A stretch of 64,000 bases of DNA from Phaeosaccion multiseriatum (GCA_965112735.1 OZ218953.1:1178001-1242000); one strand, 5' to 3'. Numbered from the stretch's first letter, positions 12,951 through 49,056 are shown. A program made the numbers and translations. Notes: generated by a model not told the origin, from the sequence alone.

Positions 12951-13188
12951 GGGAGGGTGGGGGAGGGCGCAAACTCATTCATGTGTCCTCCCCTTTCTCT
13001 AGGAAGCAAAACGTGTGAAGTGCTCCAACACTTCGTCTCTTCCATTTTAATAAAAGAATAGCATTCTTTTTTTTGAGAAAACTTGGATTAACTTAAGAAT
13101 GCATGTTTCGCCAATATGGAATACAATTCAATGGGGCCATTGGCTCGACCGTCAAGGAAAGGTTTGTGGGCTTCAAGGTGAGCCCGCT

Positions 13189-14299
13189 TCAGTTACTCCC
13201 GCTGCCGCTGCCGCTGCCGCTGCCGCTCCCACTCGAGGACGAGTACTTCTTGGGGGGAATAACTGGGTCGGAGTAGACAGGCTGCCGAGAGAGAAGGACG
13301 AGGAGGAGGCGGGTTGGTGTGAGGACAGTGACGAGGAGAATGGAGGCAGCACAATAACGAGGACAATGGAGGTCCGACTTCACTCCCTTTCCCTCTTACC
13401 TTGTGATGGATCACCACGGGATACGGCTAAGCAGAAGAAGCGTTGGGAGCAAGTTGAGTGTGTGAAGTAAGAGAACAGAGGAGCATTATAGAGCAAGAGA
13501 GCAGTTTACAAGGATAGAAGCTCACCTTGTAGCGTGTGAACTCGGGGTAGTGTCCACCCTTGGTCTTCTTGTACTTCGAGGCCCCGTAGTAGCCCTTGCC
13601 GTATCCGCCCCAGCCACCATAGCCTCCGCGGCTCCCAGATCCGGATCCGCTGCCTGACGCAGAGCCAGAGCCAGAGCCAGAGCCAGAGCTGGACTTGCCT
13701 CCGTACCACTTGTGGTGATAGACAGGGTAGTGGACTGTCTTGAGGAAGTAGGGGGCGTGCTGGTGAACGACGCCCGGCCCCCCGCCGTAACCGCCAAGCT
13801 GTCGGTGCCCGGAGCCGCTGCCGCTCGAGGAGGAGTACTTCTTGGGGGGAATAACTGGGTCGGAGTAGACAGGCTGCCGAGAGAGAGGGGATGAGGCGGA
13901 GCGGGTTGGTGTGAGTGCGGGGACGACGGTGAGGAGGAGAATGGAGGATAACGAGGGCGATGGAGGTCCGACTTCACTCCCTCTCCCTCTCTTACCTTGT
14001 GATGGATCACCACGGGATACGGCTAGGCAGAAGAAGCGTTGAGCGAGAGGGATCACGGGAGCAAATGACAAGAGAGTGAGGCGAGTGAGTGAAGTAAGAG
14101 AACAGAGGAGCATTATAGGGTAGAAGCTCACACAGAGGCGCATTATAGGGTAGAAGCTCACACCTTGTAGCGTGTGAACTCGGGGTAATGTCCACCCTTG
14201 GTCTTCTTGTACTTCGAGGCCCCGTAGCCCCTGCCGTATCCGCCCCAGCCACCATAGCCTCCGCGGCTCCCAGATCCGGATCCGCTGCCTGACGCAGAG

Positions 14300-14330
<31 letters not shown>

Positions 14331-14535
14331 TGGACTTGCCTCCGTACCACTTATGGTGATAGACAGGGTAGTGGACTGTCTTGAGGAAGTAGGGGGCGTG
14401 CTGGTGAACAACGCCCGGCCCGCCGCCGTACCCGGCGGGCAGCTTACGGGGGACGAGCTTCTGCTCCTCCTGCGCCTCCCCGGCGCAGAGGCCCACGAGG
14501 GCCAGGATGGTGGTGGTGAAGGCGGCGAGCTTCAT
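13189..14535 (-). CDS. A1: secreted two-module Tyr/His/Lys/Ser/Gly-rich protein with RXL motifs (silaffin/cingulin-like), ~288 aa
   Basis: Exons 14535-14164, 14022-13996 (27-bp microexon PYPVVIHHK), 13873-13526, 13426-13400 and 13281-13189, all phase 0 with GT-AG. Signal-like MKLAAFTTTILALVGLCAG, propeptide EAQEEQKLVPRKL, internal HRQL. Confidence 0.85.
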
Positions 14536-14658
14536 GGCTAGATGAAAGTTGTGAGCGTGGGGCTCTCCCTCCCGGGCGTGTCATAGAAGCATGCCCTTGA
14601 CATGCAAAATGAGCTCCTGGAAATGAAGCCCGTTTTGAATCACTATTCAAACTCTCCC

Positions 14659-14666
14659 TTTTTATA
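14659..14666 (-). promoter_or_regulatory. Candidate TATA box of A1
   Basis: TATAAAAA about 125 bp upstream of the ATG, conserved at the equivalent position for A2 (19010-19017, -) and A3 (45457-45464, +). Confidence 0.4.
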
Positions 14667-16237
14667 CTTCGTTGAAGGCGAGAGAACACTTTGTGCTATT
14701 CCCCACGTCATTGGCCCTTTCTTCGTTGGAGAGCAGCAGCCTGCGTGCTGGACAAACCGCCGCCACAGTCCCCACACCTCTTCACCGGCTCACGCCTTGT
14801 AGCGAGAAAGTACAAGCATGCCTGCCACTAGGTTGGAGGTCATCGCTCGGATAGGAGCGACACCGAGGCTGAGCGAGAGCCAAGGGGATCGTCAAGAAGC
14901 CCTTGGGGCGGGCGGGCTGGGTAGACGAATGGTACCACGAGAGGAGGAGTTCGGCAGACGGCATGGCCTACCAATCAAGCTTTCTGTTGGCACGAGGGAC
15001 GTAGAGCAGCCTAGTGGGAAATGCGGAGAGCAGTGCCATCTCTCTATACGGCTTAATGGCGTTCTTCCACTTGTGGTAAAATGTCAATGCAAGACCGACC
15101 AATCCATCGCGACGCGAGCTGCTCCTCCTGTGTCATGCTCTTTCGTCAGACATGCCGCCGCCTGAGGCGGACATTCCAGCCCTACGGGGGGCGATCAACG
15201 GCAGTCTCGGCTTCAATACTTGTATACTCGCGCGAAGTGCCAGTTTTGGGTCTGTGCATTGGTGCTCTCCCCCATCCCCTCAAAAGAGCAGGCTACTATT
15301 CATGCTGCACAGATGGCGAAGTTGAAGAAGAAGGTCCCCCGTCCCGACCCTTGTGCGTCTGACGGAAGGTCGAGTCTCTGCTCCTGATGCAGACTGTTGC
15401 AGACTCTTGCAGGTCCAAGCGCCCCAACGCGAGTCAGCGCCTTGCCCACACACACCTTGCCCACCCACGCCCTGCCTACAGCAGCTTGTGCCTCGCATCC
15501 CCGCAACAGTGCTATGCCGGTGATCCCTTAGAGCAGGAGATGCAACACCTGTCCATGCCCGCCTTTCCCAGCAAGGGGCAGAGCGACTCGACAGAGGGTC
15601 AGGCCGTCATGCCGATGTGCCTCTACGCCTGCTCACGAAGACCTGCCGCATGTGCCTTCTGTGTGGCCCCAAAGAGGCGATCTCTCTTCCAAAACCATAC
15701 TGGAAGTGCTCACTTCTGCAGTGCGCGAAGCCGATGCTAAGAAGCGAGCGAGTGTTGCGTGCAGTCAAGGTGCCGGCAAAAACTCGAGAGCGAAAGCCCA
15801 ACAGCTCTTATCGGGAAACAATGAAGTACCTTCGTTGCTGCAAGGAATTGCTCGCCCCACTCTTCGTCCTGCGCAAAGATCCTCCTCTCCATGGGGGATG
15901 TTCGCCATAGTGCACACTTTCCCCCCTGCAGTGGCACTCCCGCGGTGGACAAGCTTCCTCCGCTTCCTAAGCTGCTACTGCAGCCTGTGGTATGGATGTT
16001 CTCTCTGTTGCCATCATGACGAAGGGGAGCTGCGCAGGGAGAGCGATGCTCGCGGAGAGAGCAGATACCGGGAGGGGAAGTGGGCGTGGAAGAGGCCCAA
16101 TCTGGAGCAGCAAAAAGGGTTCCTTGGAAATGTGCTCTGGTAAATGGCGCTTGACACCTCGCCACACAAGCCCCCTCTCTGCTCACAATCACTCTTCCCC
16201 TGCAAGCAACCACCCCCAAAACCAACCCACACTCAAG

Positions 16238-17011
16238 ATGCAGGTTCTCCAAGTGCTCATGGCCCTCGCAGCCGCCCTCGCTTTTGCCACCAGCGCCAGC
16301 GTGCCCATTACGGACGCCGCCACTGCGGAAGAGACCAACCAACGCGAGCTGTAAGTGGTCCTCAAGGCGCGTCGTTTCTGCTTTTTTGCGTCTCTTAGAA
16401 CCGTGCCGCTCCTCCTTTTCATTGCTGTTGGCCTCGATTCTCACGTTGAGTGCGTCCCTCGCCTTTCGTCCCGTGTCTCATGCTGCACTCGTAGTCACTA
16501 TGGACGCAGCTCATCGGGCTCCAAGTCTTACGGCAGGGGCTGGGGCCGCGGCTACGGCAGGGGCTGGGGCCACGGCTACGGCAGGGGCTGGGGCTCCTCG
16601 CTCTCCTCCTCGGGCTCCAAGTCTTCCTCGGGTGGACGCTTCTATGGCAGGGGCTGGGGCCACGGCTACGGCAGGGGCTGGGGCTCCTCGCTCTCCGCCT
16701 CGGGATCCAAGTCTTCTTCAGGATCCAAGTCCTCGGGTAGTGGACACTTCTACGGCAGGGGCTGGGGCTCCTCCTCCTCCAAGTCTTCCTCGGGTAGCTC
16801 AGGCTCCTCCTCGGGCTCCAAGTCTTCCTCGGGTAGCTCGGGCTCCTCCTCCTCCAAGTCTTCATCCTCCAAGTCTTCCTCGGGATCCTCCTCCTCCAAG
16901 TCTTCCTCGGGTAGCTCAGGCTCCTCCTCGGGCTCCAAATCTTCCTCGGGTAGCTCATCCTCCAAGTCTTCCTCGGGTAGCTCAGGCTCCTCCTCCAAGG
17001 GTGCATGGTAA
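16238..17011 (+). CDS. B1: secreted Trp/Tyr/Arg-Gly repeat plus Ser/Lys-rich protein with REL propeptide, ~209 aa
   Basis: Exon 1 16238-16350 (MQVLQVLMALAAALAFATSASVPITDAATAEETNQREL), GTAAGT..TAG intron, exon 2 16495-17011 (six YGRGWG units, SSKSSSG repeats, ends KGAW*). Confidence 0.85.
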
Positions 17012-17477
17012 AGAGACCAGGACAGGACTACGAGTAAGCGAGCAGCACATGCACCTCGCGTAACGATTGAATGAAACGATTTAAGCCACGCTTCTTCTGC
17101 CCCCCTTCGCAACCTTGTCATATAAACTCTGCGATGCACTCTGCGATGCACCTCCGTCCTTTCGCGTCGTTTGCGATGCTCTCGCAGTTTGAGATGCACC
17201 TTCTCGCTTGCTTCGCGTCAAGCAGCAGCGGTGACTCTCCCTACGTAAGCCCCCGCTCTCCATTCTCTTTAGCAACCAAACCCTTGAGCTTCTCAGGAAG
17301 TCATGGAGTCCTAGACCTTGACGGAAGCCAACAGCGCGTGTGCATGGAAACTTCGTGGTGTGTCAAAATTGTTTCGATTAACTTAAAATGCAAGTTTCGC
17401 CAATATGGAATACAATTCAATGCGGCCATTGGCTCGACCGTCAAGGAAAGGTTTGTGGGCTTCAAGGTGAGCCCGCT

Positions 17478-18005
17478 TCAGTTACTCCCGCTGCCGCTGC
17501 CGCTGTCGCTGCCGCTGCCGCTGTCGCTGCCGCTGTCGCTCCCGCTCGAGGACGAGTACTTCTTGGGGGGAATAACTGGGTCGGAGTAGACAGGCTGCCG
17601 AGAGAGAAGGACGAGGAGGAGGCGGGTTGGTGTGAGGACAGTGACGAGGAGAATGGACGCAGGACAAGAACGAGGACAATGGAGGTCCGACTTCACTCCC
17701 TTTCTATCTCACCTTGTGATGGATCACCACGGGATACGGCTGAGCAGAAGAAGCGTTGAGCGAGAGGGATCACGGGAGCAAGACAAGAGAGTGGGGCGAG
17801 TGAGTGAAGCAAGAGAAAGGAAGGGAGAAGAGAGCAAGAGAGTAGCTAACAAGGGTAGAAGCTCACCTTGTAGCGTGTGAACTCGGGGTAATGTCCACCC
17901 TTGGTCTTCTTGTACTTCGAGGCCCCGTAATAGCCCTTGCCGTATCCGCCCCAGCCGCCATAGCCTCCGCGGCTCCCAGATCCGGATCCGCTGCCTGACG
18001 CAGAG

Positions 18006-18042
<37 letters not shown>

Positions 18043-18881
18043 TGGACTTTCCTCCGTACCACTTGTGGTGATAGACAGGGTAGTGGACTGTCTTGAGGAA
18101 GTAGGGGGCATGCTGGTGAACTACGCCCGGCCCGCCGTATTTCCCGCCAAGCTGTCGGCGCCCGGAGCCGCTGCCGCTCGAGGAGGAGTACTTCTTGGGG
18201 GGGATGACAGGGTCGGAGTAGACAGGCTGGCGAGAGAGAGTGGACGAGGCGGGTGCGAGTTGATGTGGGTACGGGGAGGACAGTGACGAGTGACAATGGA
18301 GGCAGGACAATAACGAGGGCAATGGAGGTCCGACGTCGCTCCCTTTCCCTCTCTTACCTTGTGATGGATCACCACGGGATACGGCTAAGCAGAAGAAGCG
18401 TTGAGCGAGAGGGATCACGGAAGCAAGTGACACAGAGAGTGAGGCGAGTGAGTGAAGTAAGAGAACAGAGGAGCATTATAGAGCAAGAGAGCAGTTTACA
18501 AGGGTAGAAGCTCACCTTGTAGCGTGTGAACTCGGGGTAATGTCCCCCCTTGGTCTTCTTGTACTTCGAGGCCCCGTAGTAGCCCTTGCCGTATCCGCCC
18601 CAGCCACCATAGCCTCCGCGGCTCCCAGATCCGGATCCGCTGCCTGACGCAGAGCCAGAGCCAGAGCCAGAGCCAGAGCTGGACTTTCCTCCGTACCACT
18701 TGTGGTGATAGACAGGGTAGTGGACTGTCTTGAGGAAGTAGGGGGCGTGCTGGTGAACGACGCCCGGCCCGCCGTATTTGCCGCCCAGCTTACGGGGGAC
18801 GAGCTTCTGCTCCTCCTGCGCCTCCCCGGCGCAGAGGCCCACGAGGGCCAGGATGGTGGTGGTGAAGGCGGCGAGCTTCAT
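17478..18881 (-). CDS. A2: paralog of A1, ~298 aa
   Basis: Exons 18881-18516, 18384-18358, 18226-17867, 17739-17713 and 17594-17478; motifs VPRKL and GRRQL. Confidence 0.85.
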
Positions 18882-20615
18882 GGCTAGATGAAAGTTGTGA
18901 GTGTGGGGCTCTCCCTCCCAGGCCGTGTGTCATAGAACCATGCCCTTGACATGCAAAAATGAGCTCCTGGAAAAGGAACCCTTTTTGAATCACTATTCAA
19001 CACTCTCCCTTTTTATACTTCGTTGAAGGCGAGAGAACATCGTTGGCCTTTTCTTCGTTGGAGAGCAGCAGCCTGCGTGCTGGACAAACCGCCGCCACAG
19101 TCCCCACACCTCTTCACCGGCTCACTTGCTTGAGTAGCGTCTGCAGTGGACGACGAAGATCCAAACGAGCTCAGGCCTTGTGGCGAGAAAGTACAAGCAT
19201 GCCTGCCACTAGGTTGGAGGTCATCACTCGGACAGGAGCGGCACCGAGGCTGAGCGAGAGCCAAGGGGATCGTCAAGAAGCCCTTGGGGCGGGCGGGCTG
19301 GGTAGACGCATGGTACCACGAGAGGAGGAGTTCGGCAGACGGCATGTCCTACCAATCGAGCTTTCTGTTGGCACGAGGGACGTAGAGCAGCCGAGTGGGA
19401 AATGCGGAGAGCGGTGCCATCTCTCTATACGGCTTCATGGCGTTCTTCCACTTGTGGTAAAATGTCAATACAAGACCGACCAATCCATCGCGACGCGAGC
19501 TGCTCCTCCTGTGTCATGCTCTTTCGTCAGACATGCCGCCGCCTGAGGCGGACATTCCAGCCCTACGGGGGGCGATCAACGGCAGTCTCGGCTTCAATAC
19601 TTGTATACTCGCGCGAAGTGCCAGTTTTGGGTCTGTGCATTGGTGCTCTCCCCCCCCCCCCTCAAAAGAGCAGGCTACTATTCCTGCTGCACAGATGGCG
19701 AAGTTGAGGAAGAAGGTCCCCCGTCCCGACCCTTGTGCGTCTGACGGAAGGTCGAGCCTCTGCTGCTGATGCAGACTGTTGCAGACTCTTGCACGTCCAA
19801 GCGCCCCAACGCGAGTCAGCGCCTTGCCCACACACACCTTGCCCACCCACGCCCTGCCCACACCAGCTTGTGCCTCGCATCCCCGTGACAGCGCTATGCC
19901 GGTGATCCCTTAGAGCAGGAGATGCAACACATGTCCAAGCCCGCCTTTCCCAGCAAGGGGCAGAGCGACTCGACAGAGGGTCAGGCCGTCATGCCGATGT
20001 GCCTCTGCGCCTGCTCACGAAGACCTGCCGCATGTGCCTTCTGTGTGGCCCCAAAGAGGCGATCTCTCTTCCAAAACCATACTGGAAGTGGCTTCTGCAG
20101 TGCGCGAAGCCGATGCTAAGAAGCGAGCGAGTGTTGCGTGCAGTCAAGGTGCCGGCAAGAACTCGAGAGCGAAAGCCCAACAGCTTATCGGGAAGCAATG
20201 AAGTACCTTCGTTGCTGCAAGGAATTGCTCGCCCCACTCTTCGTCCTGCGCAAAGATCCTCCTCTCCATGGGGGATGTTCGCCATAGTGCACACTTTCCC
20301 CCCTGCAGTGGCACTCCCGCGGTGGACAAGCTTCCTCCGCTTCCTAAGCTACTACTGCAGCCTGTGGTATGGATGTTCTCTCTGTTGCCATCATGACGAA
20401 GGGGAGCTGCGCAAGGACAGCGATGCTCGCGGAGAGAGCAGATACCGGGAGGGGAAGTGGGTGTGGAAGAGGCCCAATCTGGAGCAGCAAAAAGGGTTCC
20501 TTGGAAATGTGCTCTGGTAAAATGGCGCTTGACACCTCGCCACACAAGCCCCCTCTCAGCTCACAATCACTCTTCCCCTGCAAGCAACCACCCCTAAGAC
20601 CAACCCACTCTCAAG

Positions 20616-21295
20616 ATGCAGGTTCTCCAAGTGCTCATGGCCCTCGCAGCCGCCCTCGCTTTTGCCACCAGCGCCAGCGTGCCCATTACGGACGCCGCCA
20701 CTGCGGAAGACACCAACCAACGCGAGCTGTAAGTGGTCCTCAAGGCGCGTCGTTTCTGCTTTTTTGCGTCTCTTAGAACCGTGCCGCTCCTCCTTTCATT
20801 GCTGTTGGCCTCGATTCTCACGTTGAGTGCGTCCCTCGTCTGTCGTCCCGTGTCTCATGCTGCACTCGTAGTCACTATGGACGCAGCTCATCGGGCTCCA
20901 AGTCATACGGCAGGGGCTGGGGCCGCGGCTACGGCAGGGGCTGGGGCCACGGCTACGGCAGGGGCTGGGGCTCCTCGCTCTCCTCCTCGGGCTCCAAGTC
21001 TTCCTCGGGTGGACGCTTCTATGGCAGGGGCTGGGGCCACGGCTACGGCAGGGGCTGGGGCTCCTCGCTCTCCGCCTCGGGATCCAAGTCTTCTTCAGGA
21101 TCCAAGTCCTCGGGTAGTGGACACTTCTACGGCAGGGGCTGGGGCTCCTCCTCCTCCAAGTCTTCCTCGGGTAGCTCAGGCTCCTCCTCGGGCTCCAAGT
21201 CTTCCTCGGGTAGCTCGGGCTCCTCCTCCTCCAAGTCTTCATCCTCCAAGTCTTCCTCGAGTAGCTCGGGCTCCTCCTCCAAGGGTGCATGGTAA
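20616..21295 (+). CDS. B2: paralog of B1 with a shorter Ser/Lys tail, ~178 aa
   Basis: Exons 20616-20728 and 20872-21295, same intron position, ends KGAW-TAA. Confidence 0.85.
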
Positions 21296-21767
21296 AGAGA
21301 CCAGGACAGGACTCCGAGTAAGCGAGCAGCACATGCACCTCGCGTAACGATTCAATGAAACGATCTGCCCCCTCCGCGGCCATGGCCATAGAAGTCCTTT
21401 GCGAGCACCGCCGTCCTTTCGTGTCGTTTGTCGCAGTTTGAGATGCACCTTCTGGCTTGCTTCGCGTCACAAATCAGCAGCGGTTATTCTCCCTACGACG
21501 TGTAAGCCCCCGCTCTCCATTCTCTTGGCAACCAACCCCTTGTGCTTGTGGAGTCCTGACCTTGACGAAGCAGCTGAGCAGACAGAGCATCACGTGGGCC
21601 TGGAGACTTCAAGTGATGAGACTTGCAGCGTGATGTGTCAAAACTGTTTGATTTTAAAGTGACTCGGTTACGTTACTCGGTGGTTGCCTTGCTTGATTAA
21701 GTTACTTGGTGTTTGCCAGTATGTAGTAGCCACTCGCGAGACTTGTGATACGGAAAGGGTGCGGGCT

Positions 21768-22677
21768 TCAGTTTGAGCCACTGTTGGAAGCAGAGCTGCC
21801 GGATGACGAGGACGAGTCGCCGGAAGAAGAGTACTTCTTGGGGGCGATGACGTGGTCACTGTAGACAGGCCAATGATTCACTTGGACTTTGTATGGCTGA
21901 GGGAGGGTGAGAGAGGCCAACAGCGGCGCGTGGGTGTGCGTGCAGAAATCAGAGATCAACCGCAAGCCGAATAGCGGTTCGGATGGAGAGGAACGAGCCG
22001 CCAAAATCAATGAAGAGGAGCAAAGTCAAGCCCTCTCTCACTCTCTTTAGCTCCCCCCCTCACCTTGTAGCGAGTGAACTCAGGGTAGTGCCCGCCTTTC
22101 GTCTTCTTGTAGCGAGTGGCGCCGTACATGCCCCCATAGCCACTGTACCCCGAGCTTGGGCCAGAGCCAGAGGACTTCGAGCCAGAGGAGCTGGAGCCAG
22201 AGGAGCTAGAGCCACTGCTGGACTTTCCTTCATGCCACTTGTGGTGATGGACGGAGAGCATCTATATGAATACAGGGGATCAAAGGTATGCCTCCCTCCG
22301 TTCCTCCCTCGCTACCCCCCTTGACTCACCTTGTAGCGTGTGAACTCAGGGTAGTGCCCTCCCTTCGTCTTCTTGTAGTGAGAGGCGCCATAGCCACCGG
22401 AGCCCTTGGACGAGGACCCGTAGCCCTTGGAGAATCCGCTTCCTCTGCTTGACGAGGAAGAAGCGCTGCTGCCCGAGCTACTGGACTTGCCCCCGCTGTG
22501 CCACTTATGGTAATAGACTGGGTAATGCACTGTCTTGAGGTAGTAGGGGACGTGCTGGTGAACCACGCCGGGCTTGCCGCCAAGCTTGCGCGGCACGAGC
22601 TTCTGCTCCTGCTGCACCTCGCCGGTGCAGAGGCCTACGAGGGCCAGGATGGTGGCGGCAAAGGCGGTGACCTTCAT
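21768..22677 (-). CDS. C1: diverged A-type paralog with an internal ~325-bp deletion; intact via cryptic splicing, or a pseudogene
   Basis: Exon 1 22677-22330 (MKVTAFAATILALVGLCTGEVQQEQKLVPRKL...), exon 2 remnant 22261-22064, exon 3 21896-21768. The normal exon-2 acceptor seen in C2 is missing. Confidence 0.65.
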
Positions 22678-24396
22678 GGCTGGCAAGTATGCAAAAGAAG
22701 TGGTTGTGGCTTCGCCTGCATCTCCCCTCAAGCCGTGTCACCAAATGCTAGAGCCGTGATGTGCAGAACAGACCCCCGTTCCCTCCGAAGAACCCTTTTG
22801 ATCGTACCACCAACAGCTTTTCCCCAGGAAGATCGCTCACCCATAATAACCTCTTCACTGGAAGACTGTGGCCGTACCAGCGTGTGCGGTCGATAACGAA
22901 GATCCATACGAGCTCGGGCCCCGTAGCGACAAAGTACAGGCGCGCCTCGCAACTGTGTTGGAAGCTGAAAAGAGGGAGCTTGCCGCGGCGACAGTACCGA
23001 GGGCTCCCAGAGAGCCAGTCAAGGAAGGCATCAACAGAGGCAGGCGAGCGGAACGCTTGGGGCGGCTAGGGCTGGGTAGACGGTTAGCATCACTAGAAGG
23101 GCGATACACGATCAGAGAAGGGGGTCGGCTGACGAGTCCAGCTATTCTGTGGGCACGAGGACAGTCTGAGGGAGGCGAGTTCTTGGGAGGATTTGGGGGA
23201 TGTGCAGCAGCCGAGCGGGAGATAAGGAGGACGGTGCCATCTCTCGATCGCTCTCACAAGCTCTATTCCACTACTCGTGAAACGTCAATGCAACACATCA
23301 AGGAAACATCGCAATGCGAACTGCTGCTCCTATATTTCACCCTTCGCCAGACATTCCCTGCCTCACTTGGGCATCCCAGCCCTCAGTCCTCAGCTTTCAG
23401 CTAATGAAGTCGCGCGTCTCATGAGTAGCTTGGGCGCAAGGTGCAGTTGTGGGTGTGGCATTTGTGCTCGCTCTCCCTCCAAAGAGCCAGGTTTGCTGTC
23501 CGAGCAACACCGCTTTGGCTGCTGCACGGGCATGTTGAGGGCGGGCGTCCCCCGACCCTTCCCTGTGACGGTAGCCTCAGCCTCGGCTGCTGCTGAGGCT
23601 AATCTTCTCCTACAAATAGAGCTCCACCATTTGGGAATACCAACGGGGGGTGCGCGCCCTGCACGGAACATTCTGGGACGAACTGGCAGGAAGCAAGTCG
23701 CGAGGTGGGCAGAGAGCAGTGGAGGGTTCGCTCTCCCCGCTCCTCAGAGCGCTGGCCACCGCTGTCCCGTCCCTGTAGTCTCCTCCTGGATACACTCCTT
23801 TCTTCCAGCTCGCAGACACGCCCCCCCCCCTCTGAGCTACAGAATGCGCAGATCCACATAGCCTACAACTGTACCGTCGCACCGAGAAGGGCGCGAGTGT
23901 TGCGGTGAGCTGCTGGCGTGTACGCATAACAGCTTCTCGCGTGCAGTAGAGGCCCCTCCAGGGGCGCTGAGCCTTCCAATGTGCCCCCCCAGCACCGCAC
24001 AAGGGCCGGGCCGAAAGAGGGGAGCGGCTGCTGCTGCGGGTATGATGACCACGTGGCGTGGGCTCACAGAGGCTCAACGCCACAGCAGATGGCCGCAACA
24101 CACCACGCGGGGCCATATGCCTCGGAAGGAATGCACGCTGCGTTGTCCGCGTTGCCCAGCAGCCTCAGCGGCCACCTCAACAGCAAAGCTCGCGACGAGG
24201 ACGACGACGACGACAAGGAGGAGGAGGGGGAGGAGGAGGAGGAGGAGGAGGAGGAGGAGGAGGAGGGCAGGACTGACGGGCACGTCCAACCCCCCCTCCT
24301 CACATACCAAGCCCATCACGACCATCCTTGGACCCTCCCTCTCTCTGCACGCCCTCGTCCGCCATTGTCTACATGCAGGTCTATGACGCGCCGAGC

Positions 24397-25494: not shown

Positions 25495-25934
25495 GCTTAC
25501 TACTGCTGCTTCTGTTACTACTTCTATTGCTGCTACTGCAACTCCTGCGAAAGTTTTGGTGAGAAGCTGCTACACTGACAAACAAAAACAAAGGATCAAC
25601 AAAGCAAGAGAGAGGAGGGGAACCAGCCCAGCCCTCAGCAGTGTGTTCAGCCCAGCCCCAAGCAGTTTCGTTAGAAAAGGCAGATAATCCCCAACCCGAA
25701 TAACGAGGAGAGGAGAGCGAACCAGTCGCCAGAGGAGGAGCAGCAGCAGTAGAAGTAAAGCAGCAGAAGCAGCGAGAGCGAGAGAGGAGCGAAGAAGGCG
25801 CACACTGGCACTTGGCGGCGGGGTGTTGGCGGGTCTTGGCCCAGCAGAGACAAAGACACATTATTGGCACCTTCCTGGGCTGGAGGACGGGGCCATAGCG
25901 GGGAGAGGAGGGGTTTGAGGGCCGAGGCGCCAAG

Positions 25935-26457: not shown

Positions 26458-26520
<63 letters not shown>

Positions 26521-32289: not shown

Positions 32290-32344
<55 letters not shown>

Positions 32345-34392: not shown

Positions 34393-34451
<59 letters not shown>

Positions 34452-37400: not shown

Positions 37401-40400
37401 GGGGGTTGAAGGGGTGGCTGCTGCAGCTGGAAGATCCGGATGGGGTGATCGGAGAGGCAGCTAGGTCCAGTGGGGTGGATAGAGAGGAAGGGGGGGAGGA
37501 GGAGGGGAAGAAGGAGGGGGAGAAAGAGAAGGAGAAGGAGGCGAAGTCGGAGGCGGAGAAGCCAGATGATTGGCTTGTTACGGAGAAAAAGCGTCAGCTG
37601 GAGGTGCGGGAGACTCTATCGAGTCTTCTGCATGAGGAAGAGGACGGCGCGCCTGCAGAGGGCCTTGCCGGCGATAAGGCGAAGGACGGTAGAGCTGGCG
37701 GGGTTGGCGTGGACTGGGTGGTGGAGCCCGAGGAGAAGCAGCGGCAATTGGCGATACAGCACACGCTGACGAACCTCCTGGTGGGTGATGATGTTGATGG
37801 TGATGATGAAAGGAAGGAGGAGGAGGAAGGAGAGGGGAAGGAGGGCAAAGGAATCGGGAAGAAGAAAGCCGCAGCAGAAGCAGCAGCTTGTGCCAGCGAT
37901 GGCAAGAACGACGACAAGGTCAAGGTGCTCAAGGGGAGGAGGAGGTGCAAGGGAGACCAGAGAGACCAGAGACAAGGCCTGCTGCTCACGAGGCTCGAAG
38001 TGCTCCTCATTCTCGGCTCTGTGCGCCGCGCCAGTACCGCGGAGAACAACGCGGCCCTAAACCTGCTCTGTGTGACGGCGTTGTGGGATCGGATGGTCGA
38101 GAGTTGCGAGGCTCTCAAGATGGCAGCGGACGCGTTTGAAACCGCCTCGTGCAAGAGGATGGAGCAGGAGCTGGAGGAGAAGCTGGCGGAGGCTCTGGTG
38201 CACCAACACACCACTGCTTCTACCGTCTCTTCCGTCTCTTCTGTCTCCGCCGTCTCCTCCGTCTGCTACTCCTCTTCTTCCTCCTCCTCCTCCTCCTCTT
38301 CCTCCGCCTCCTCCCCCTCCCGCACGCCACGGGTGTTATCAACACCATCGCTTCACGGCGACTCGAGCGTCGCTCCCGCGGGAGGTGATGACTGGCAGCA
38401 GCGATGGAGGCGAGTAGAAGATGACGCCGCCGTCGCAATTCAGGCCCTGGTGCGGAAGCAGCAAGCCGTGCGCACTTACAAATACATGCAGCAGCACCAG
38501 GACGGGGCGGTCGTCAACGTTCAGAGGCAGGTTCGGGTGCGGGAAGCACGAAGGCCGCTGCAGGGAAAGACGCAACAGGAGGAAGCAGCAGTAGCTATCC
38601 AGGGTATTGTTCGGAAACGGGAGGCACACAAAGTGTTGAAGGAGAAGAGGGAGCAGAAGGACGCGGCAGTGGCCATCCAGGGTATTGCTCGACGCAGGCA
38701 GGCTGGGAAGAATGTGCAGGAGAGGAGGCGACAGAATGATGCGGCAGTCGCTATCCAGGGCATCGCTCGGCACAGGCACGCAAAGAAGGCCCTGGAGCAG
38801 AAGAGGCAGCAGAAGGAAGCGGCTGTGGCCATTCAAGGCATTGCTCGACGAAAATACGCGAAGAAGACTCTGCAGGAGAAGAGGCGGCAGAGGGAAGCGG
38901 CCATGGCTATCCAGGGCATTGTAAGAAAAAGGGCTCGAAACGCGCTGCAGTACAAGGCGGGGAAAGAAAATGACAGAAAGAAGCAGATGCAGCAGCAGCA
39001 GCAGCAAGCGGAGGAGGAGCAGCAGCAAGTGGAAGGGGGTGAGGAGGAAAGGGCGGCTGTGGCTATCCAGGGCATCGCCCGATGCAGGCACGCAAAGAAG
39101 GCTCTGGAGCAAAAGAGGCAGCGGAAAGAAGCGGCTGTGGCCATTCAAGGAATTGCTCGACGAAACCACGCAAAGAAGACTCTGGAGGAGAGGAGGAAGC
39201 AGAGGGAAGCGGCAGTCGCTATCCAGGGCATTGCTCGACGCAAACACGCGCGGAGCGTTGTGCGCGAGCGGAGAAACAAGAGCAATAGAGTTCCCCTAGA
39301 GCAGCAGCGTGCGACGCAGTCAGGCAGCGATATGATTGGGACGAGGGGGGAGGAGGTGGAGGAGAAGGCCGCCGATCCACGTGCCTCTGGGGTGGCGGGC
39401 GTATTCAGTGCCGCAAAGCGATTGAGCAAGGGGGTGGAGCGGACCGCCCTGAAGACCCTCGGGGGCATCCGTCGGCAGAGAGCGAGAGTGGGCGACAGCA
39501 AGGCGGATGCTGCTGATGCTGCTGCTGCTGCTGCCTTTTCAGCGGCTTCAGATGCCCATCCGGGGACCCAATCAAGCGCAGCCACTCGCATTCAGGCCGT
39601 GCAGCGACGCCGGGCGGCACGCCTGAAGACCAACGCGAGAAGGCAGCAGAGGGCGGCTGCCAACCTCCAGCAGAAGACGGCGAGGAAATCAAAGATCATG
39701 GGGGAGATACGCGTTGAGCAGCGCAAGCAAGAGGATCTCCTGGAGGAGGCAAAGGCCTCTGCAGCCGTCCTTATGCAGAAGGGTGAGTGAGTGAGTGAGT
39801 GCGTGCGTGTGAGTGTGTGTGACTGCATGAGTACGTCATGTGAGAGTGCGAGGATACCTGCAAATGCAAATCTCTAAAATGAGGGCCTCTGGGTTGGCTC
39901 CGCACGCTCCGTCAAGCAGTTGAACTGTCGCTAGTAGGCTCCCATATTGGAAGCGATGCCATAGAGATTTGCGGTGTTAGGACAAGCTCATGTCTGCCCC
40001 CCTCATTCCTGTTGTGCTTGGCCTCGAGCCTTTCCCCTCTTGATACCGGCAAGTACTAACGCCAAGTCTTTGGCCCGACTGCACCTCTTGTCGTGTGGAA
40101 ACCGTCTCAGCCTTCCGCGGGCACCGCGAGCGAGTGTCTGCTCCAGCTCGGCGGGAAGCAGTTCGAAAGCGGCGTCTGATGTTTGAGCGAGGTCTGAATG
40201 ATGGTACAATCATCGTTGCAGAAACACCTGGTCAAGAGGAGATACTGATGCTTGGCGAAAAAGCAGGAGAAGGATGGGCCAGAGACGAGAGGCGCGAAGA
40301 TTTCCTCCGAGGTGTGAGAGGGAGCAGGAAGATTCATCGCCAGATTGCACACGAGCAGAGCATGTGGGATGATCGGGACGAAGATAAAAGAGGCGAGAGC

Positions 40401-40409: not shown

Positions 40410-41336
40410 GAGACTTCAGATGACGCTTGGGAGGGTATCACCTCTAAGCGACAAGTCACGGGGGCTCTGGAACCCCATGCCCATGCACGCAAGAAGTGCT
40501 CTTTCGTTTGTGAAGGCAGTTAGCGTGGAGGAGTCTGCGCATCCCAAGGGCAGCAGGAGAGGGGCGGGGGAGGGCGGATGCATTATGTCGGGCGGAAAGG
40601 GGGGGGGGTCTCTCTCATCTGGGAGAAACGTTTTGCTCTATTTACTACAGTAACCAACTAACATGTTGGTCTCACAGGAGCTCTCTGTTTGATAGTGCTA
40701 GTAGTATTTACTTGATCGGTGTTGCATTGACATTTCACAGGTAGTGGAACAGAGCTTGTGAGAGCGATCGAGAGATGGCACCGTCCTCCGCATCTCCCGC
40801 TCGGCTGCTGCACATCCCCCAAATCCTCCCAAGAACTCGCCTCCCTCAGACTGCCCTCGTGCCCACAGAATAGCTGGACTCGTCAGCCGACCCCCTTCTC
40901 TGATCGTGTACCGCCCTTCTAGTGATGCTAACCGTCTACCCAGCCCTAGCCACCCCAAGCGTTCCGCTCGCCTGCCTCTGTTGATGCCCTCCTTGACTGG
41001 CTCTCTGGGAGCCTCGGTACTGTCGCCGCGGCAAGCTCCCTCTTTTCAGCTTCCAACACAGTTGCGAGGCGCGCCTGTACTTTGTCGCTACGGGGCCCGA
41101 GCTCGTATGGATCTTCGTTATCGACCGCACACGCTGGTACGGCCACAGTCTTCCAGTGAAGAGGTTATAATGGGGGGGGGGGGTTCCTGGGGAAAAGCTG
41201 TTGGTGGTACGATCAAAAGGGTTCTTCGGAGGGAATGGGGGTCTGTTCTGCACATCACGGCTCTAGCATGTGGTGACACGGCTTGAGGGGAGATGCACGC
41301 GAAGCCACAATCACTTCTTTTGCATACTTGCCAGCC

Positions 41337-42580
41337 ATGAAGGTCACCGCCTTTGCCGCCACCATCCTGGCCCTCGTAGGCCTCTGCACCGGCGAGGTGC
41401 AGGAGGAGCAGAAGCTCGTGCCGCGCAAGCTTGGCGGCAAGCTCAGCGGGCCCGGCGTGGTTCACCAGCACGCCCCCTACTACCTCAAGACAGTGCATTA
41501 CCCAGTGTATTACCATAAGTGGCACAGCGGGGGCAAGTCCAGTGGCTCGGGCAGCAGCGCGTCTTCCTCGTCAAGCAGAGGAAGCGGATTCTCCAAGGGC
41601 TACGGGTCCTCGTCCAAGGGCTCCAGTGGCTATGGCGCCTCTCACTACAAGAAGACGAAGGGAGGGCACTACCCTGAGTTCACACGCTACAAGGTGAGTC
41701 GAGGGGGGTGGCGAGGGAGGGACGGAGGGAGGCATAGCTTTGATCCCCTGTGTTCATATAGATGCTCTCTGGCTCACGCTGCTGCTCGCCACTGCGTCTT
41801 GCCTCTCTCTTTCTCTCTCTCTTTGTGTCTTTTATCTCTCTCTCTTTGCGTCTCTTTCGTTCTCTTTTTTGTCTCTCTCTCTCTCTCTCTCCCTCGCTCT
41901 CCCTCTCTCTCTCAGCCGTACAAAGTCCAGATAAATCATTGGCCTGTGTACAGTGACCACGTTATCGCTCCGAAGAAGTACTCCTCTTCCAGCGACTCGT
42001 CCTCATCATCCGGCCGCCAGCTTGGCGCCAAGTCCAGCGGACCGGGCATCGTTCACCAACATGCCCCGTACTACCTCAAGACAGTGCATTACCCCGTCTA
42101 TCACCACAAGTGGCATGAAGGAAAGTCCAGCAGTGGCTCTAGCTCCTCTGGCTCGAAGTCCTCCGGCTCTAGCTCCTCTGGCTCTGGCCCAAGCTCGGGG
42201 TACAGTGGCTACGGGGGCATGTACGGCGCCACTCGCTACAAGAAGACGAAAGGCGGGCACTACCCTGAGTTCACTCGCTACAAGGTGAGGGGGGGAGCTA
42301 AAGAGAGTGAGAGAGGGCTTGACTTTGCTCCTCTTCATTGATTTTGGCGGCTCGTTCCTCTCCATCCGAAGCGCTCTTCGGCCTGCGGTTGATCTCTGAT
42401 TTCTGCACGCACACCCACGCGCCACTGTTGGCCTCTCTCACCCTCCCTCAGCCATACAAAGTCCAAGTGAATCATTGGCCTGTCTACAGTGACCACGTCA
42501 TCGCCCCCAAGAAGTACTCTTCTTCCGGCGACTCGTCCTCGTCATCCGGCAGCTCTGCTTCCGACAGTGGCTCAAACTGA
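41337..42580 (+). CDS. C2: intact diverged A-type secreted two-module RXL protein, ~284 aa
   Basis: Exons 41337-41693, 41916-42284 and 42452-42580; motifs VPRKL and SGRQL; ends SGSN*. Confidence 0.85.
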
Positions 42581-43063
42581 AGCCCGCACCCTTTCCGTAT
42601 CACAAGTCTCGCGAGTGGCTATTACATACTGGCAAACACCAAGTAACTTAATCAAGCAAGGCAAACACCGAGTAACGTAACCGAGTCACTTTAAAACCAA
42701 ACAGTTTTGACACATCACGCTGCAAGTCTCATCACTTGAAGTCTCCAGGCATACGTATGCTCTGTCTGCTCAGCTGCTTCGTCAAGGTCCAGGACTCCAC
42801 GTAAGCTCAAGGGGTTGGTTGCCAAGAGAAATGGAGAGCGGGGGCTTACGCGTCGTAGGGAGAATAACCGCTGCTGATTTGTGACGCGAAGCAAGCCAGA
42901 AGGTGCATCTCAAACTGCGAGAGCATCGCAAACGACACGAAAGGACGGCGGTGCTCGCAAAGGACATCTATGGCCATGGCCGCGGAGGGGGCAGATCGTT
43001 TCATTAAATCGTTACGCGAGGTGCATGTGCTGCTCGCTTACTCGTAGTCCTGTCCTGGTCTCT

Positions 43064-43842
43064 TTACCATGCACCCTTGGAGGAGGAGCCCGAGCTACCC
43101 GAGGAAGACTTGGAGGATGAGCTACCCGAGGAAGATTTGGAGCCCGAGGAGGAGCCTGAGCTACCCGAGGAAGACTTGGAGGAGGAGGATCCCGAGGAAG
43201 ACTTGGAGGATGAAGACTTGGAGGAGGAGGAGCCCGAGCTACCCGAGGAAGACTTGGAGCCCGAGGAGGAGAGCGAGGAACCCGAGTAGCCCCAGCCCCT
43301 GCCGTAGAAGTGTCCACTACCCGAGGACTTGGATCCTGAAGAAGACTTGGATCCCGAGGCGGAGAGCGAGGAGCCCCAGCCCCTGCCGTAGCCGTGGCCC
43401 CAGCCCCTGCCGTAGCCGTGGCCCCAGCCCCTGCCATAGAAGCGTCCACCCGAGGAAGACTTGGAGCCCGAGGAGGAGAGCGAGGAACCCCAGCCCCTGC
43501 CGTAGCCGTGGCCCCAGCCCCTGCCGTAGCCGCGGCCCCAGCCCCTGCCGTAAGACTTGGAGCCCGATGAGCTGCGTCCATAGTGACTACGAGTGCAGCA
43601 TGAGACACGGGACGAAAGGCGAGGGACGCACTCAACGTGAGAAATGAGGCCAACAGCAATGAAAGGAGGAGCGGCACGGTTCTAAGAGACGCAAAAAAGG
43701 GGAAACGACGCGCCTTGAGGACTACTTACAGCTCGCGTTGGTTGGCCTCTTCCGCAGTGGCGGCGTCCGTAATGGGAACGCTGGCGCTGGTGGCAAGAGC
43801 GAGGGCGGCTGCGAGGGCCATGAGCACTTGGAGAACCTTCAT
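43064..43842 (-). CDS. B3: B-type secreted protein, ~211 aa
   Basis: Exons 43842-43730 (MKVLQVLMALAAALALATSASVPITDAATAEEANQREL) and 43586-43064. Confidence 0.85.
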
Positions 43843-45587
43843 CTTGAGTGTGGGTTGGTTTTGGGGGTGGTTGCTTGCAGGGGAAGAGTGATTGTGAGCA
43901 GAGAGGGGGCTTGTGTGGCGAGGTGTCAAGCGCCATTTACCAGAGCACATTTCCAAGGAACCCTTTTTGCTGCTCCAGATTGGGCCTCTTCCACGCCCAC
44001 TTTCCCTCCCGGTATCTGCTCTCTCCGCGAGCATCGCTCTCCCTGCGCACCTCCCCTTCGTCATGATGGCAACAGAGAGAACATCCATACCACAGGCTGC
44101 AGTAGCAGCTTAGGAAGCGGAGGAAGCTTGTCCGTGGCGGGAGTGCCACTGCAGGGGGGAAAGTGTGCACTATGGCGAACATCACCCATGGAGAGGAGGA
44201 TCTTTGCGCAGGACGAGAGTGGGGCGAGCAATTCCTTGCAGCAACGAAGGGACTTCATTGTTTCCCGATAAGAGCTGTTCGGCTTTCGCTCTCGAGTTTT
44301 TGCCGGCACCTTGACTGCACGCAACACTCGCTCGCTTCTTAGTATCGGCTTCGCGCACTGCAGAAGCCACTTCCAGTATGGTTTCGGAAGAGACATCGCC
44401 TCTTTGGGGCCACACAGAAGGCACATGCGGCAGGTCTTCGTGAGCAGGCGCAGAGGCACATCGGCATGACGGCCTGACCCTCTGTCGAGTCGCTCTGCCC
44501 CTTGCTGGGAAAGGCGGGCATGGACATGTGTTGCATCTCCTGCTCTAAGGGATCACCGGCATAGCACTGTTGCGGGGATGCGAGGCACAAGCTGCTGTGG
44601 GCAGGGCGTGTGTGGGCGAGGTGTGTGTGGGCAAGGCGCTGACTCGCGTTGGGGCGCTTGGACGTGCAAGAGTCTGCAACAGTCTGCATCAGGAGCAGAG
44701 ACTCGACCTTCCGTCAGACGCACGCACAAGGGTCGGGACGGGGGACCTTCTTCCTCAACTTCGCCATCTGTGCAGCATGAATAGTAGCCTGCTCTTTTGA
44801 GGGGATGGGGGAGAGCACCAATGCACAGACCCAAAACTGGCACTTGGCGCGAGTATATTGAAGCCGAAACTGCCGTTGATCGCCCCCCGTAGGGCTGGAA
44901 TGTCCGCCTCAGGCGGCGGCATGTCTGACGAAAGAGCATGACACAGGAGGAGCAGCTCGCGTCGCGATGTCTTGGTCGGTCTTGCATTGACATTTTACGG
45001 TAAGTGGAAGAACGCCATTAAGCCGTATAGAGAGATGGCACTGCTCTCCGCATTTCCCACTCGGCTGCTCTACGTCCCTCGTGCCAACAGAAAGCTCGAT
45101 TGGTAGGACATGCCGTCTGCCGAACTCCTCCTCTCGTGGTACCATTCGTCTACCCAGCCCGCCCGCCCCAAGCGCTTCTTGACGATCCTCTTGGCTCTCG
45201 CTCAGCCTCGGTGCCGCTCCTGTCCGAGTGACGACCGCCAACCTAGTGGCAGGCATGCTTGTACTTTCTCGCTACAAGGCCTGAGCTCGTTTGGATCTTC
45301 GTCGTCCACTGCAGACGCTACTTCAGCAAGTGAGCCGGTGAAGAGGTGTGGGGACTGTGGCGGCGGTTTGTCCAGCACGCAGGCTGCTGCTCTCCAACGA
45401 AGAAAGGGCCAATGACGTGGGGAAAGGCACAAAGTGTTCTCTCGCCTTCAACGAAGTATAAAAAGGGAGAGTGTTGAATAGTGATTCAAAACGGGCTTCA
45501 TTTCCAGGAGCTCATTTTGCATGTCAAGGGCATGCTTCTATGACACGCCTGGGAGGGAGAGCCCACGCTCACAACTTTCATCTAGCC

Positions 45588-45789
45588 ATGAAGCTCGCTG
45601 CCTTCACCACCACCATCCTGGCCCTCGTGGGCCTCTGCGCCGGGGAGGCGCAGGAGGAGCAGAAGCTCGTCCCCCGTAAGCTGGGCGGCAAATACGGCGG
45701 GCCGGGCGTCGTTCACCAGCACGCCCCCTACTTCCTCAAGACAGTCCACTACCCTGTCTATCACCATAAGTGGTACGGAGGCAAGTCCA

Positions 45790-45826
<37 letters not shown>

Positions 45827-46977
45827 CTCTGCGTCAGGCAGCGGATCCGGATCTGGGAGCCGCGGAGGCTATGGTGGCTGGGGCGGATACGGCAAGGGCT
45901 ACTACGGGGCCTCGAAGTACAAGAAGACCAAGGGTGGACATTACCCCGAGTTCACACGCTACAAGGTGTGAGCTTCTTCTTCTACCCTATAATGCGCCTC
46001 TGTGTGAGCTTCTACCCTATAATGCTCCTCTGTTCTCTTACTTCACTCACTCGCCTCACTCTCTTGTCATTTGCTTCCGTGATCCCTCTCGCTCAACGCT
46101 TCTTCTGCTTAGCCGTATCCCGTGGTGATCCATCACAAGGTAAGAGAGGGAGAGGGAGTGACGTCGGACCTCCATTGCCTTCGTTATTGTCCTGCCTCCA
46201 TTGTCACTCGTCACTGTCCTCCCCGCACTCACATCAACTCGCACCCGCCTCGTCCACTCTCTCTCGCCAGCCTGTCTACTCCGACCCTGTCATCCCCCCC
46301 AAGAAGTACTCCTCCTCGAGCGGCAGCGGCTCCGGGCGCCGACAGCTTGGCGGGAAGGGGCCGGGCGTAGTTCACCAGCATGCCCCCTACTTCCTCAAGA
46401 CAGTCCACTACCCTGTCTATCACCACAAGTGGTACGGAGGAAAGTCCAGTTCTGGCTCTGGCTCTGGCTCTGGCTCTGCGTCAGGCAGCGGATCCGGATC
46501 TGGGAGCGGCGGAGGCTATGGTGGCTGGGGCGGATACGGCAAGGGCTACTACGGGGCCTCGAAGTACAAGAAGACCAAGGGTGGACATTACCCCGAGTTC
46601 ACACGCTACAAGGTGAGCTTCTACCCTTGTTAACTACTCTCTTGCTCTCTTGTCACATCTATTCTCTTGCTTCACTCACTCACCCCACTCTCTTGTATTG
46701 CTCCCGTGATCCCTCTCGCTCAACGCTTCTTCTGCTCAGCCGTATCCCGTGGTGATCCATCACAAGGTAAGAGGGAAAGGGAGTGAAGTCGGACGTCCAT
46801 TGTCCTCGTTATTGTCCTGCCTCCATTCTCCTCGTCACTGTCCTCACACCAACCCGCCTCCTCCTCGTCCTTCTCTCTCGGCAGCCTGTCTACTCCGACC
46901 CAGTGATTCCCCCCAAGAAGTACTCGTCCTCGAGTGGGAGCGACAGCGGCAGCGGCAGCGACAGCGGGAGTAACTGA
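45588..46977 (+). CDS. A3: A-type secreted protein, ~288 aa
   Basis: Exons 45588-45965, 46113-46139, 46271-46612, 46740-46766 and 46885-46977. Confidence 0.85.
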
Positions 46978-47439
46978 AGCGGGCTCACCTTGAAGCCCAC
47001 AAACCTTTCCTGACGGTCGAGCCAATGGCCGCATTGAATTGTATTCCATATTGGCGAAACTTGCATTTTAAGTTAATCAAACAATAATCAAAATATGAAG
47101 TCGCCATGCACACGTGCTCAACTGCTTCCGTCAAGGTCTAGGACTCCATGACTTCCTGAGAAGCTCAAGGGTTTGGTTTGCTAAGAGAATGGAGAGCGGG
47201 GGCTTACGTAGGGAGAGTAACCGCTGCTGCTTGACGCGAAGCAAGCGAGAAGGTGCATCTCAAACTGTGCGAGAGCATCGCAAACGAGAAAGGACGGAGG
47301 TGCATCGCAGAGTGCATCGCAGAGTTTCTATGACAAGGCTGCGAAGGGGGGCAGAAGAAGCGTGGCTTAAATCGTTTCATTAAATCGTTACGCGAGGTGC
47401 ATGTGCTGCTCGCTTACTCGTAGTCCTGTCCTGGTCTCT

Positions 47440-48176
47440 TTACCATGCACCCTTGGAGGAGGAGCCCGAGCTACCCGAGGAAGACTTGGAGGATGAGCTA
47501 CCCGAGGAAGACTTGGAGGAGGAGGATCCCGAGGAAGACTTGGAGGATGAAGACTTGGAGGAGGAGGAGCCCGAGCTACCCGAGGAAGACTTGCCCGAGC
47601 TACCCGAGGAAGACTTGGAGCCCGAGGAGAGCGAGGAACCCGAGTAGCCCCAGCCCCTGCCGTAGAAGTGTCCACTACCCGAGGACTTGGATCCTGAAGA
47701 AGACTTGGATCCCGAGGCGGAGAGCGAGGAGCCCCAGCCCCTGCCGTAGCCGTGGCCCCAGCCCCTGCCATAGAAGCGTCCACCCAAGGAAGACTTGGAG
47801 CCCGAGGAGGAGAGCGAGGAACCCCAGCCCCTGCCGTAGCCGTGGCCCCAGCCCCTGCCGTAGCCGCGGCCCCAGCCCCTGCCGTAAGACTTGGAGCCCG
47901 ATGAGCTGCGTCCATAGTGACTACGAGTGCAGCATGAGACACGGGACGAAAGGCGAGGGACGCACTCAACGTGAGAAATGAGGCCAACAGCAATGAAAGG
48001 AGGAGCGGCACGGTTCTAAGAGACGCAAAAAAGGGGAAACGACGCGCCTTGAGGACTACTTACAGCTCGCGTTGGTTGGCCTCTTCCGCAGTGGCGGCGT
48101 CCGTAATGGGAACGCTGGCGCTGGTGGCAAGAGCGAGGGCGGCTGCGAGGGCCATGAGCACTTGGAGAACCTTCAT
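47440..48176 (-). CDS. B4: B-type secreted protein, ~197 aa
   Basis: Exons 48176-48064 and 47920-47440; ends KGAW-TAA. Confidence 0.85.
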
Positions 48177-49056
48177 CTTGAGTGTGGGTTGGTTTTGGGG
48201 GTGGTTGCTTGCAGGGGAAGAGTGATTGTGAGCAGAGAGGGGGCTTGTGTGGCGAGGTGTCAAGCGCCATTTACCAGAGCACATTTCCAAGGAACCCTTT
48301 TTGCTGCTCCAGATTGGGCCTCTTCCACGCCCACTTCCCCTCCCGGTATCTGCTCTCTCCGCGAGCCTCGCTGTCCTTGCGCACCTCCCCTTCGTCATGA
48401 TGGCAATAGAGAGAATATCCGTACCACAGGCTGCAGTAGCAGCTTAGGAAGCGGAGGAAGCTTGTCCATCGCGGGAGTGCCACTGCAGGGGGGAAAGTGT
48501 GCACTATGGCGAACATCCCCCATGGAGAGGAGGATCTTTGCGCAGGACGAGAGTGGGGCGAGCAATTCCTTGCGGCAACGAAGGTCTCCACACTTTCACG
48601 ACAAGAGCTGTTGGACGTTTTGGACGTTCGCTCTCGAGCTTTTGCCGGCACCTTGACAACAACATCATTGTGCGCCGCCTTTCGCACGTCGTTCGCACGT
48701 ATTTCGCACACTTCGCCTCGTATATGGCTCTGCGTATTGCAGGAGACACTCCCAACACTCGGATTTTTTTCTTCTTCTTGAGAAATAGACACGAGATTTA
48801 ATATTTAATTATCGCTCTCCTCATTCAGTCGTCGCCAAGGCGATGAGGAGTCGACGTTTTTTTTTGTAAGATAAGAGGCGAGCGCGCCTGTCGTGTAAAA
48901 GGAGAAGCAAGACATGCATATCTATACTGCTAACGCTTCCTTCTCCCCTACATATCTGTGATGCCGAGGCTCACAGCCTACGTGTAGAAAAACGGGGGAA
49001 GGAGAACTCCTCCTCTCCTCTTTTCCTGCTACCCTTTTTTTCACTCCCAGCATCTG

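Follow-up and report, generated by a model that had tools for sequence, protein, structure and literature searches.

What kind of protein is encoded by a cluster of short, repetitive genes whose products join a hydrophobic N-terminus to R-x-L (RXL) sites and a strongly basic remainder, and how do these proteins relate to the silica-associated proteins of diatoms? The question is raised by a stretch of DNA from Phaeosaccion multiseriatum (GCA_965112735.1 OZ218953.1:1178001-1242000), the 64,000 nucleotides (nt) of which form the window analyzed here, with positions counted from its first letter. The DNA is eukaryotic, with a guanine-plus-cytosine content of 57-64%. A first-pass annotation had described a nine-gene cluster and proposed a paired W-type/Y-type system that builds an extracellular structure, for example a scale, skeleton or cyst of silica. 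We found nine intact multi-exon genes between positions 13189 and 48176, which fall into three types (three A, two C and four B genes). We put at slightly better than even (roughly 0.55) the odds that the genes are real and lineage-specific and that they encode secreted, polycationic matrix proteins that are intrinsically disordered. Judged from the deduced precursors, the products are most likely secreted, RXL-processed matrix or cell-covering proteins.

Gene models and coding evidence

Gene models were built by six-frame motif mapping and direct reading of the DNA. The spliced frame is uninterrupted in all nine genes, and every intron has GT-AG borders. The gene count of the first-pass annotation is confirmed, with the qualification that the nine copies are duplicates of three gene types and not nine independent genes.

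A1: 13189-14535, minus strand, 288 amino acids; exons 14535-14164, 14022-13996 (27-nt microexon), 13873-13526, 13426-13400 (microexon) and 13281-13189; predicted signal peptide, RKL, module 1, linker ending in HRQL, module 2, Ser/Gly tail
A2: 17478-18881, minus strand, 298 amino acids; exons 18881-18516, 18384-18358, 18226-17867, 17739-17713 and 17594-17478; internal RRQL
A3: 45588-46977, plus strand, 288 amino acids; exons 45588-45965, 46113-46139, 46271-46612, 46740-46766 and 46885-46977
B1: 16238-17011, plus strand, 209 amino acids; exons 16238-16350 and 16495-17011; YGRGWG and Ser/Lys blocks in alternation, followed by a long Ser-rich tail
B2: 20616-21295, plus strand, 178 amino acids; exons 20616-20728 and 20872-21295; shorter Ser-rich tail
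B3: 43064-43842, minus strand, 211 amino acids; exons 43842-43730 and 43586-43064
B4: 47440-48176, minus strand, 197 amino acids; exons 48176-48064 and 47920-47440
C1: 21768-22677, minus strand, 224 amino acids as modeled; deletion derivative of C2
C2: 41337-42580, plus strand, 284 amino acids; exons 41337-41693, 41916-42284 and 42452-42580; internal GRQL

Type A genes consist of five exons. The first encodes the hydrophobic N-terminus, a 13-residue propeptide ending in RKL, and module 1, and is followed by a 27-nt microexon (nine residues). The third exon carries a Pro/Lys/Ser linker that ends in RRQL (HRQL in A1) and leads into module 2; a second 27-nt microexon and a last exon, encoding a tail that finishes in a Ser/Gly run, complete the gene. 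The two microexons had escaped mention in the first-pass annotation. Type C genes follow the same plan, except that the microexon and the linker are joined in one exon. Both A and C thus encode two-module polyproteins, with a second R-x-L, RQL, between the modules (absent in C1). Type B genes have two exons, separated by an intron that interrupts the Leu codon of REL; exon 1 encodes the predicted signal peptide and acidic propeptide, and exon 2 the entire acid-free mature part.

The evidence that the A and C frames are coding is good, and the codon differences point to selection acting on the protein. The A and C modules share about 70% protein identity (about 30% diverged). In the comparison of A with C2, synonymous codon differences number 6-8 against 2 replacements in the N-terminal box of the module (24 codons) and 8 against 1-2 in the C-terminal box (21 codons); the comparisons of the N-terminal box with C1 gave 5-7 synonymous versus 3 replacement. 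Among the A copies, exons diverge by 1.4-3.4% and introns by 7.5-13.4%. For type B, 23 of the 88 differences are synonymous in the chosen frame, compared with 7 of 88 in each of the other frames, and the chosen frame is the only one that joins the signal-peptide exon. Its use of six different Ser codons argues that it is not a simple DNA repeat.

Predicted precursors, upstream motif and search for relatives

The hydrophobic N-terminus and the RXL sites reported by the first-pass annotation are present in all nine products. The hydrophobic core has a 12-residue Kyte-Doolittle mean of 2.2-2.7, and small residues are read at positions -3 and -1 of the predicted signal peptide site. R-x-L is confined to the predicted boundaries: in A and C it takes the form of RKL (residues 30-32) and RQL (about 153-159), and in B that of REL (36-38). 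The short acidic propeptide that had also been described is found in B, where it is truly acidic; the propeptide of A and C, however, is acidic only at its start and net neutral overall, with three acidic and three basic residues.

The predicted parts that follow RXL are strongly basic and of low complexity, as had been stated, with isoelectric points (pI) of 9.7-11.4 and net charges of +9 to +21, and the motifs GGYGGWGGYG, YGRGWG, KYKKTK and SSKSSSG were all recovered. The peptides predicted from A and C measure 123-141 residues (pI 9.7-10.0). Those of A contain 23-26% Gly, 16-21% Ser, 11-12% Tyr, 9-10% Lys, 6-7% His and two Trp, and those of C are richer in Ser (24-26%, with 15% Gly); the C1 model yields one part of 192 residues because its internal RQL is deleted. 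The peptides predicted from B have 140-173 residues, a pI of 11.2-11.4, 44-49% Ser and 25-27% Gly. They hold seven to nine each of Tyr and Trp, which makes a division into W-type and Y-type proteins a loose one. A nine-residue motif, x-Y-P-x-x-x-[H/R]-[H/Y]-K, occurs three times in each A or C peptide, and one microexon corresponds to exactly one copy. Each of these peptides has two conserved His/Tyr/Pro boxes around the motif, with a Ser/Gly spacer between them. AlphaFold, run on the module alignment, predicts that the A/C modules are disordered (mean predicted local distance difference test score, 55; predicted template modeling score, 0.14; no secondary structure).

A common 12- to 15-mer emerged when the 600 nt preceding the A, B and C genes were compared. 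When AAAAGGGTTCYT (12 nt) was searched in the window with one mismatch allowed, seven matches were found versus 0.41 expected, and none of 100 shuffles reached seven. Each of the seven precedes the ATG of a family gene by 104-126 nt and has the orientation of that gene; no match is found elsewhere in the window.

16113-16124, plus strand: copy upstream of B1, 125 nt before the ATG
18985-18974: copy upstream of A2
20490-20501: copy upstream of B2
22799-22788: copy upstream of C1
41215-41226: copy upstream of C2
43967-43956: copy upstream of B3
48301-48290: copy upstream of B4

A1 has a degenerate version, and A3 appears to have one as well, judged from the translation of its open reading frame (ORF). 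Since the copies within a type are recent duplicates, the motif counts as about three independent observations. A common promoter element, with co-regulation, is the simplest reading for a motif found in B as well as in A and C, to which B is otherwise unrelated, and AAAAGGGTTCYT is a candidate promoter element common to all three gene types.

The absence of a named family, suspected in the first-pass annotation, is in line with the homology searches, all of which came back blank or with noise. No Pfam family matched at E values up to 0.01, and only noise appeared up to E 10; PDB sequences matched only through artificial Gly/Ser linkers. An exhaustive HMMER search of 1.84 billion protein cluster representatives with a profile of the A/C module had 0 hits. 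Word-indexed searches with A exon 1 and B exon 2 returned nothing, both being swamped by low-complexity words. No relative was found in JGI metagenomes or IMG/VR viral contigs, exact-product look-ups with five ORF versions found nothing on record, and a literature search with peptide strings of the family retrieved no paper. The language-model neighbors of A in the ESM Atlas are secreted Gly/Tyr-rich structural proteins (arthropod cuticle and Prisilkin-39-like shell matrix), with a score of 0.83 that is a lead only; the neighbors of B are meaningless.

Taken together, the deduced proteins agree with the picture given in the first-pass annotation of secreted precursors in which an RXL-ended propeptide would be removed to release basic, low-complexity peptides. 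We infer the following path from gene to product. The signal peptide would bring each precursor into the endoplasmic reticulum. A protease cutting after R-x-L, of the kind inferred for diatom biosilica-associated proteins, would then take off the propeptide of 13-18 residues and, in A and C, also part the two modules. This would release basic peptides, about 125-170 residues long, with YGRGWG "stickers" alternating with Ser/Lys spacers in those of B. Outside the cell, such peptides could gather into a wall, scale, cyst or similar covering, held together by contacts between aromatic and cationic residues and possibly by cross-linking of Tyr. Recent amplification of the copies may provide a high dosage, and the common promoter element may co-regulate the three types.

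Several observations weigh against this reading. The signal peptide call is a heuristic one, based on hydropathy and small residues at -3/-1, and RXL cleavage of the Phaeosaccion proteins is a prediction from sequence. The internal RQL may have been inherited through duplication of the RKL-GGK junction and is therefore not independent evidence. In the public runs that cover 41250-47050, intergenic depth equals that of the genes and no intron-skipping joints occur, so these runs were treated as DNA and not as transcript evidence. Finally, several frames are open across the B repeats, and the coding evidence for B is weaker than that for A and C.

Two other assignments were considered and rejected. 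Plastid targeting of B was set aside given that the residue following a possible ALA cleavage site is Phe in B1 and B2, yet Leu in B3 and B4. The RXLR motif of oomycete effectors has Arg at the fourth position and lies downstream of a signal peptide, in most cases with an acidic dEER stretch after it. At the sites found here (RKLG, RQLG and RELH) the fourth residue is not Arg, and basic Gly-rich sequence follows. A separate ATG-started frame at 56343 (plus strand) encodes a hydrophobic N-terminus followed by RLQREL and has no obvious kinship to the family.

Comparison with silica-associated proteins and weighing of alternatives

In Sil1p of Cylindrotheca fusiformis, a signal peptide and an acidic N-terminal part precede RXL and the basic repeat units, whose RRIL or RRNL ends are removed in the mature peptides (PMC4557024). 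Cingulins contain KXXK-containing regions that alternate with Trp/Tyr-rich regions (PMC4557024). Silaffin-like proteins have been screened for as a signal peptide combined with repeated KXXK (X = S or G) separated by 1-6 residues, and a pentalysine cluster has been defined as five Lys within 12-14 residues (PMC5501833). RXL cleavage of secreted precursors is documented for diatom proteins (PMC4557024, PMC5501833). The motif has also been reported in silicanin homologues of Parmales (PMC10328945) and noted in Siliplant1 (Slp1) of sorghum (10.1101/518332), which indicates that it is not exclusive to diatoms.

Against this background, the A/B/C family is silaffin- and cingulin-like in layout and is a member of neither group by their definitions or by homology. 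With Sil1p and the silaffin-like proteins of Thalassiosira pseudonana it shares the signal peptide (here a heuristic call), the N-terminal propeptide, the RXL sites and strongly basic repeats rich in Ser, Lys and Gly. Like Sil1p, the A proteins are polyproteins with RRxL-type unit ends (RRQL or HRQL) and no conserved fold. Sequence homology, however, was not detected, and K[SG][SG]K is found zero times in every part of all nine proteins. The propeptide is also shorter, at 13-18 residues versus about 88 in Sil1p, and the conserved His/Tyr/Pro boxes of A and C are not seen in silaffins. Moreover, silaffins are silica-associated proteins of diatoms, whereas the host of the present family is apparently not a diatom and a link of the family to silica would be conjectural. 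The likeness of the A linker to the silaffin R5 peptide, pointed out in the first-pass annotation, stands for composition and the C-terminal RRxL and does not extend to homology.

The resemblance to the W- and Y-type cingulins of T. pseudonana, which are likewise secreted, repetitive and provided with RXL, is clearest in B, where YGRGWG blocks alternate with Ser/Lys blocks. These Ser/Lys regions lack KXXK, however, the proteins are far shorter, no homology was detected, and the split of cingulins into W and Y types does not map onto B versus A, since Trp and Tyr are equally numerous in B. Slp1 provides a land plant counterpart that is also secreted, basic and repetitive, with RXL at some repeat ends and Pro/Tyr/His-rich subdomains (10.1101/518332). 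Its sequence is unrelated, and precipitation of silica, directly documented for Slp1 in silica cells, would be hypothetical for the A/B/C family.

Could the peptides nevertheless act as silaffin- or cingulin-like polycationic templates that pattern silica in scales, cysts or walls? The shared grammar of signal peptide, propeptide, RXL and basic Ser/Lys-rich repeats speaks for this, as do the RRQL ends of the A units, which compare with RRIL and RRNL of the Sil1p units (PMC4557024), and the alternation of aromatic and Ser/Lys blocks in B. In addition, one cluster of five Lys within 13 residues, similar to a pentalysine cluster (PMC5501833), occurs in five of the six A modules, although none occurs in A1 module 1, in B or in C. 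The absence of KXXK and the blank profile search with the A/C module, which found no homology to diatom proteins, count against templating, and the paired W-type/Y-type silica-forming system proposed in the first-pass annotation has no support in proteins that all lack KXXK. We regard silica templating as unsupported and unlikely. Precipitation of silica in vitro would be a weak test, since it is also brought about by polylysine, lysozyme and other generic polycations (PMC4557024).

Other roles were weighed in the same way. The Y-P-...-K motif recalls the Tyr/Pro/Lys decapeptides known from adhesive proteins and the proline-rich wall proteins of plants, and the disordered sticker-spacer composition of polycationic proteins with as much Gly, Tyr and His as A would suit a coacervate or glue for attachment, carried as mucilage or extrusome cargo and similar to marine adhesive and beak proteins rich in Gly, Tyr and His. 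We consider this improbable, given that the likeness is compositional only, that no Pfam family appears even at E up to 10 and that no feature of the window points to adhesion or extrusomes. A role in defense or signaling, in which polyprotein precursors are cut into antimicrobial Gly/Arg/Trp-rich peptides, would account for the propeptides, the strongly charged R/W-rich YGRGWG blocks and the rapid change in copy number. The predicted units of 125-170 residues with long Ser tracts are nevertheless far above the typical length of antimicrobial peptides, and no amphipathic or Cys-stabilized structure is predicted, which makes this role very unlikely. It could also be argued that the frames are non-functional and open by chance in recently amplified low-complexity DNA, as the open frames across the B repeats would allow; the copies are young, so that little decay is expected, and no sign of expression comes from the public runs. 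This is hard to reconcile with A and C proteins whose boxes have been kept through mostly synonymous change despite the divergence of the modules, with splice sites and microexons retained in all copies and with a common upstream motif at a fixed distance from the ATG, and we hold it to be extremely unlikely.

The preferred reading of the family as matrix or cell-covering proteins has analogues in plant glycine-/proline-rich wall proteins and animal Gly/Tyr/His-rich structural proteins, which are also secreted, disordered, Gly/Tyr-rich and of low complexity. As in those proteins, the short Y-P/V-Y-K-like motifs of the family could cross-link. The analogy is compositional only, with neighbor scores below 0.9 and no Pfam match, and RXL propeptide processing, predicted for the A/B/C precursors, is not a feature of these plant and animal families.

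A wider version of this reading, which we think rather doubtful, is that a non-diatom ochrophyte draws on a large repertoire of disordered, polycationic, RXL-processed proteins encoded throughout its genome, with A, B and C as one co-regulated module, and uses them to build, and perhaps mineralize, an extracellular covering. If so, the "silaffin grammar" and the RXL protease pathway would be ancestral to, or widespread in, ochrophytes and not a diatom invention. Silaffins, cingulins and their kin are known almost only from diatoms and have a grammar in common, not a sequence. An orphan family of the same grammar in an apparently non-diatom alga would give a handle on the age and generality of RXL-dependent processing of matrix proteins. 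It also offers a candidate cis-element for co-regulated wall genes and new disordered polycationic sequences with possible uses in materials. Should the products be ordinary wall or mucilage components, the gain would be limited to a useful annotation of genes so far hidden.

Duplication history and the rest of the window

The copies derive from a 4.38-kilobase (kb) tandem repeat and a large inverted duplication, with identities of 95-98%.

Left arm: 13086-23400, in the order A1 (minus), B1 (plus), A2 (minus), B2 (plus), C1 (minus); holds two 4.38-kb tandem units of A plus B
Right arm: 40700-48700, in the order C2 (plus), B3 (minus), A3 (plus), B4 (minus); mirror image of the left arm, 96-98% complementary

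The two arms form a palindrome around unique genes that span about 17 kb, among them a sybindin/TRAPPC4-like gene (minus strand) and an LMBR1-like gene (plus strand) at 24640-28430. The closest copies are B1 with B2 and B3 with B4, and not the mirror partners across the arms, a pattern suggestive of gene conversion inside each arm. Relative to C2, C1 has a deletion of 324-325 base pairs that took out the linker with its RQL as well as the beginning of module 2 (22254-22330 versus 41693-42094), and its frame would stay open only through a cryptic acceptor at 22261. The deletion junction (41768 joined to 42094) is present in public contigs of three runs, so that an assembly error can be discounted.

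The (SG)n spacer of the A modules (13600-13700, 14280-14340 and equivalents) is partly a (TCTGGC)n microsatellite whose length varies among copies; the adjoining sequence uses mixed codons. This microsatellite probably explains why 5% of the sampled words of A3 were found in a run labeled "plant metagenome".

Scans of the window against Rfam and for tRNAs returned nothing. A 1,365-amino-acid open frame at 35693-39790 (plus strand), without a Pfam family at E up to 0.01, contains about 10 evenly spaced IQ-like repeats of the form AAVAIQGIARR-x-x-AKK. Another open frame, at 4736-6145 (plus strand), carries a long coding minisatellite with repeats of approximately QVSGVRC, and frames throughout the window contain many (TG)n, (CT)n, poly-Q, poly-E, poly-R and poly-S tracts.

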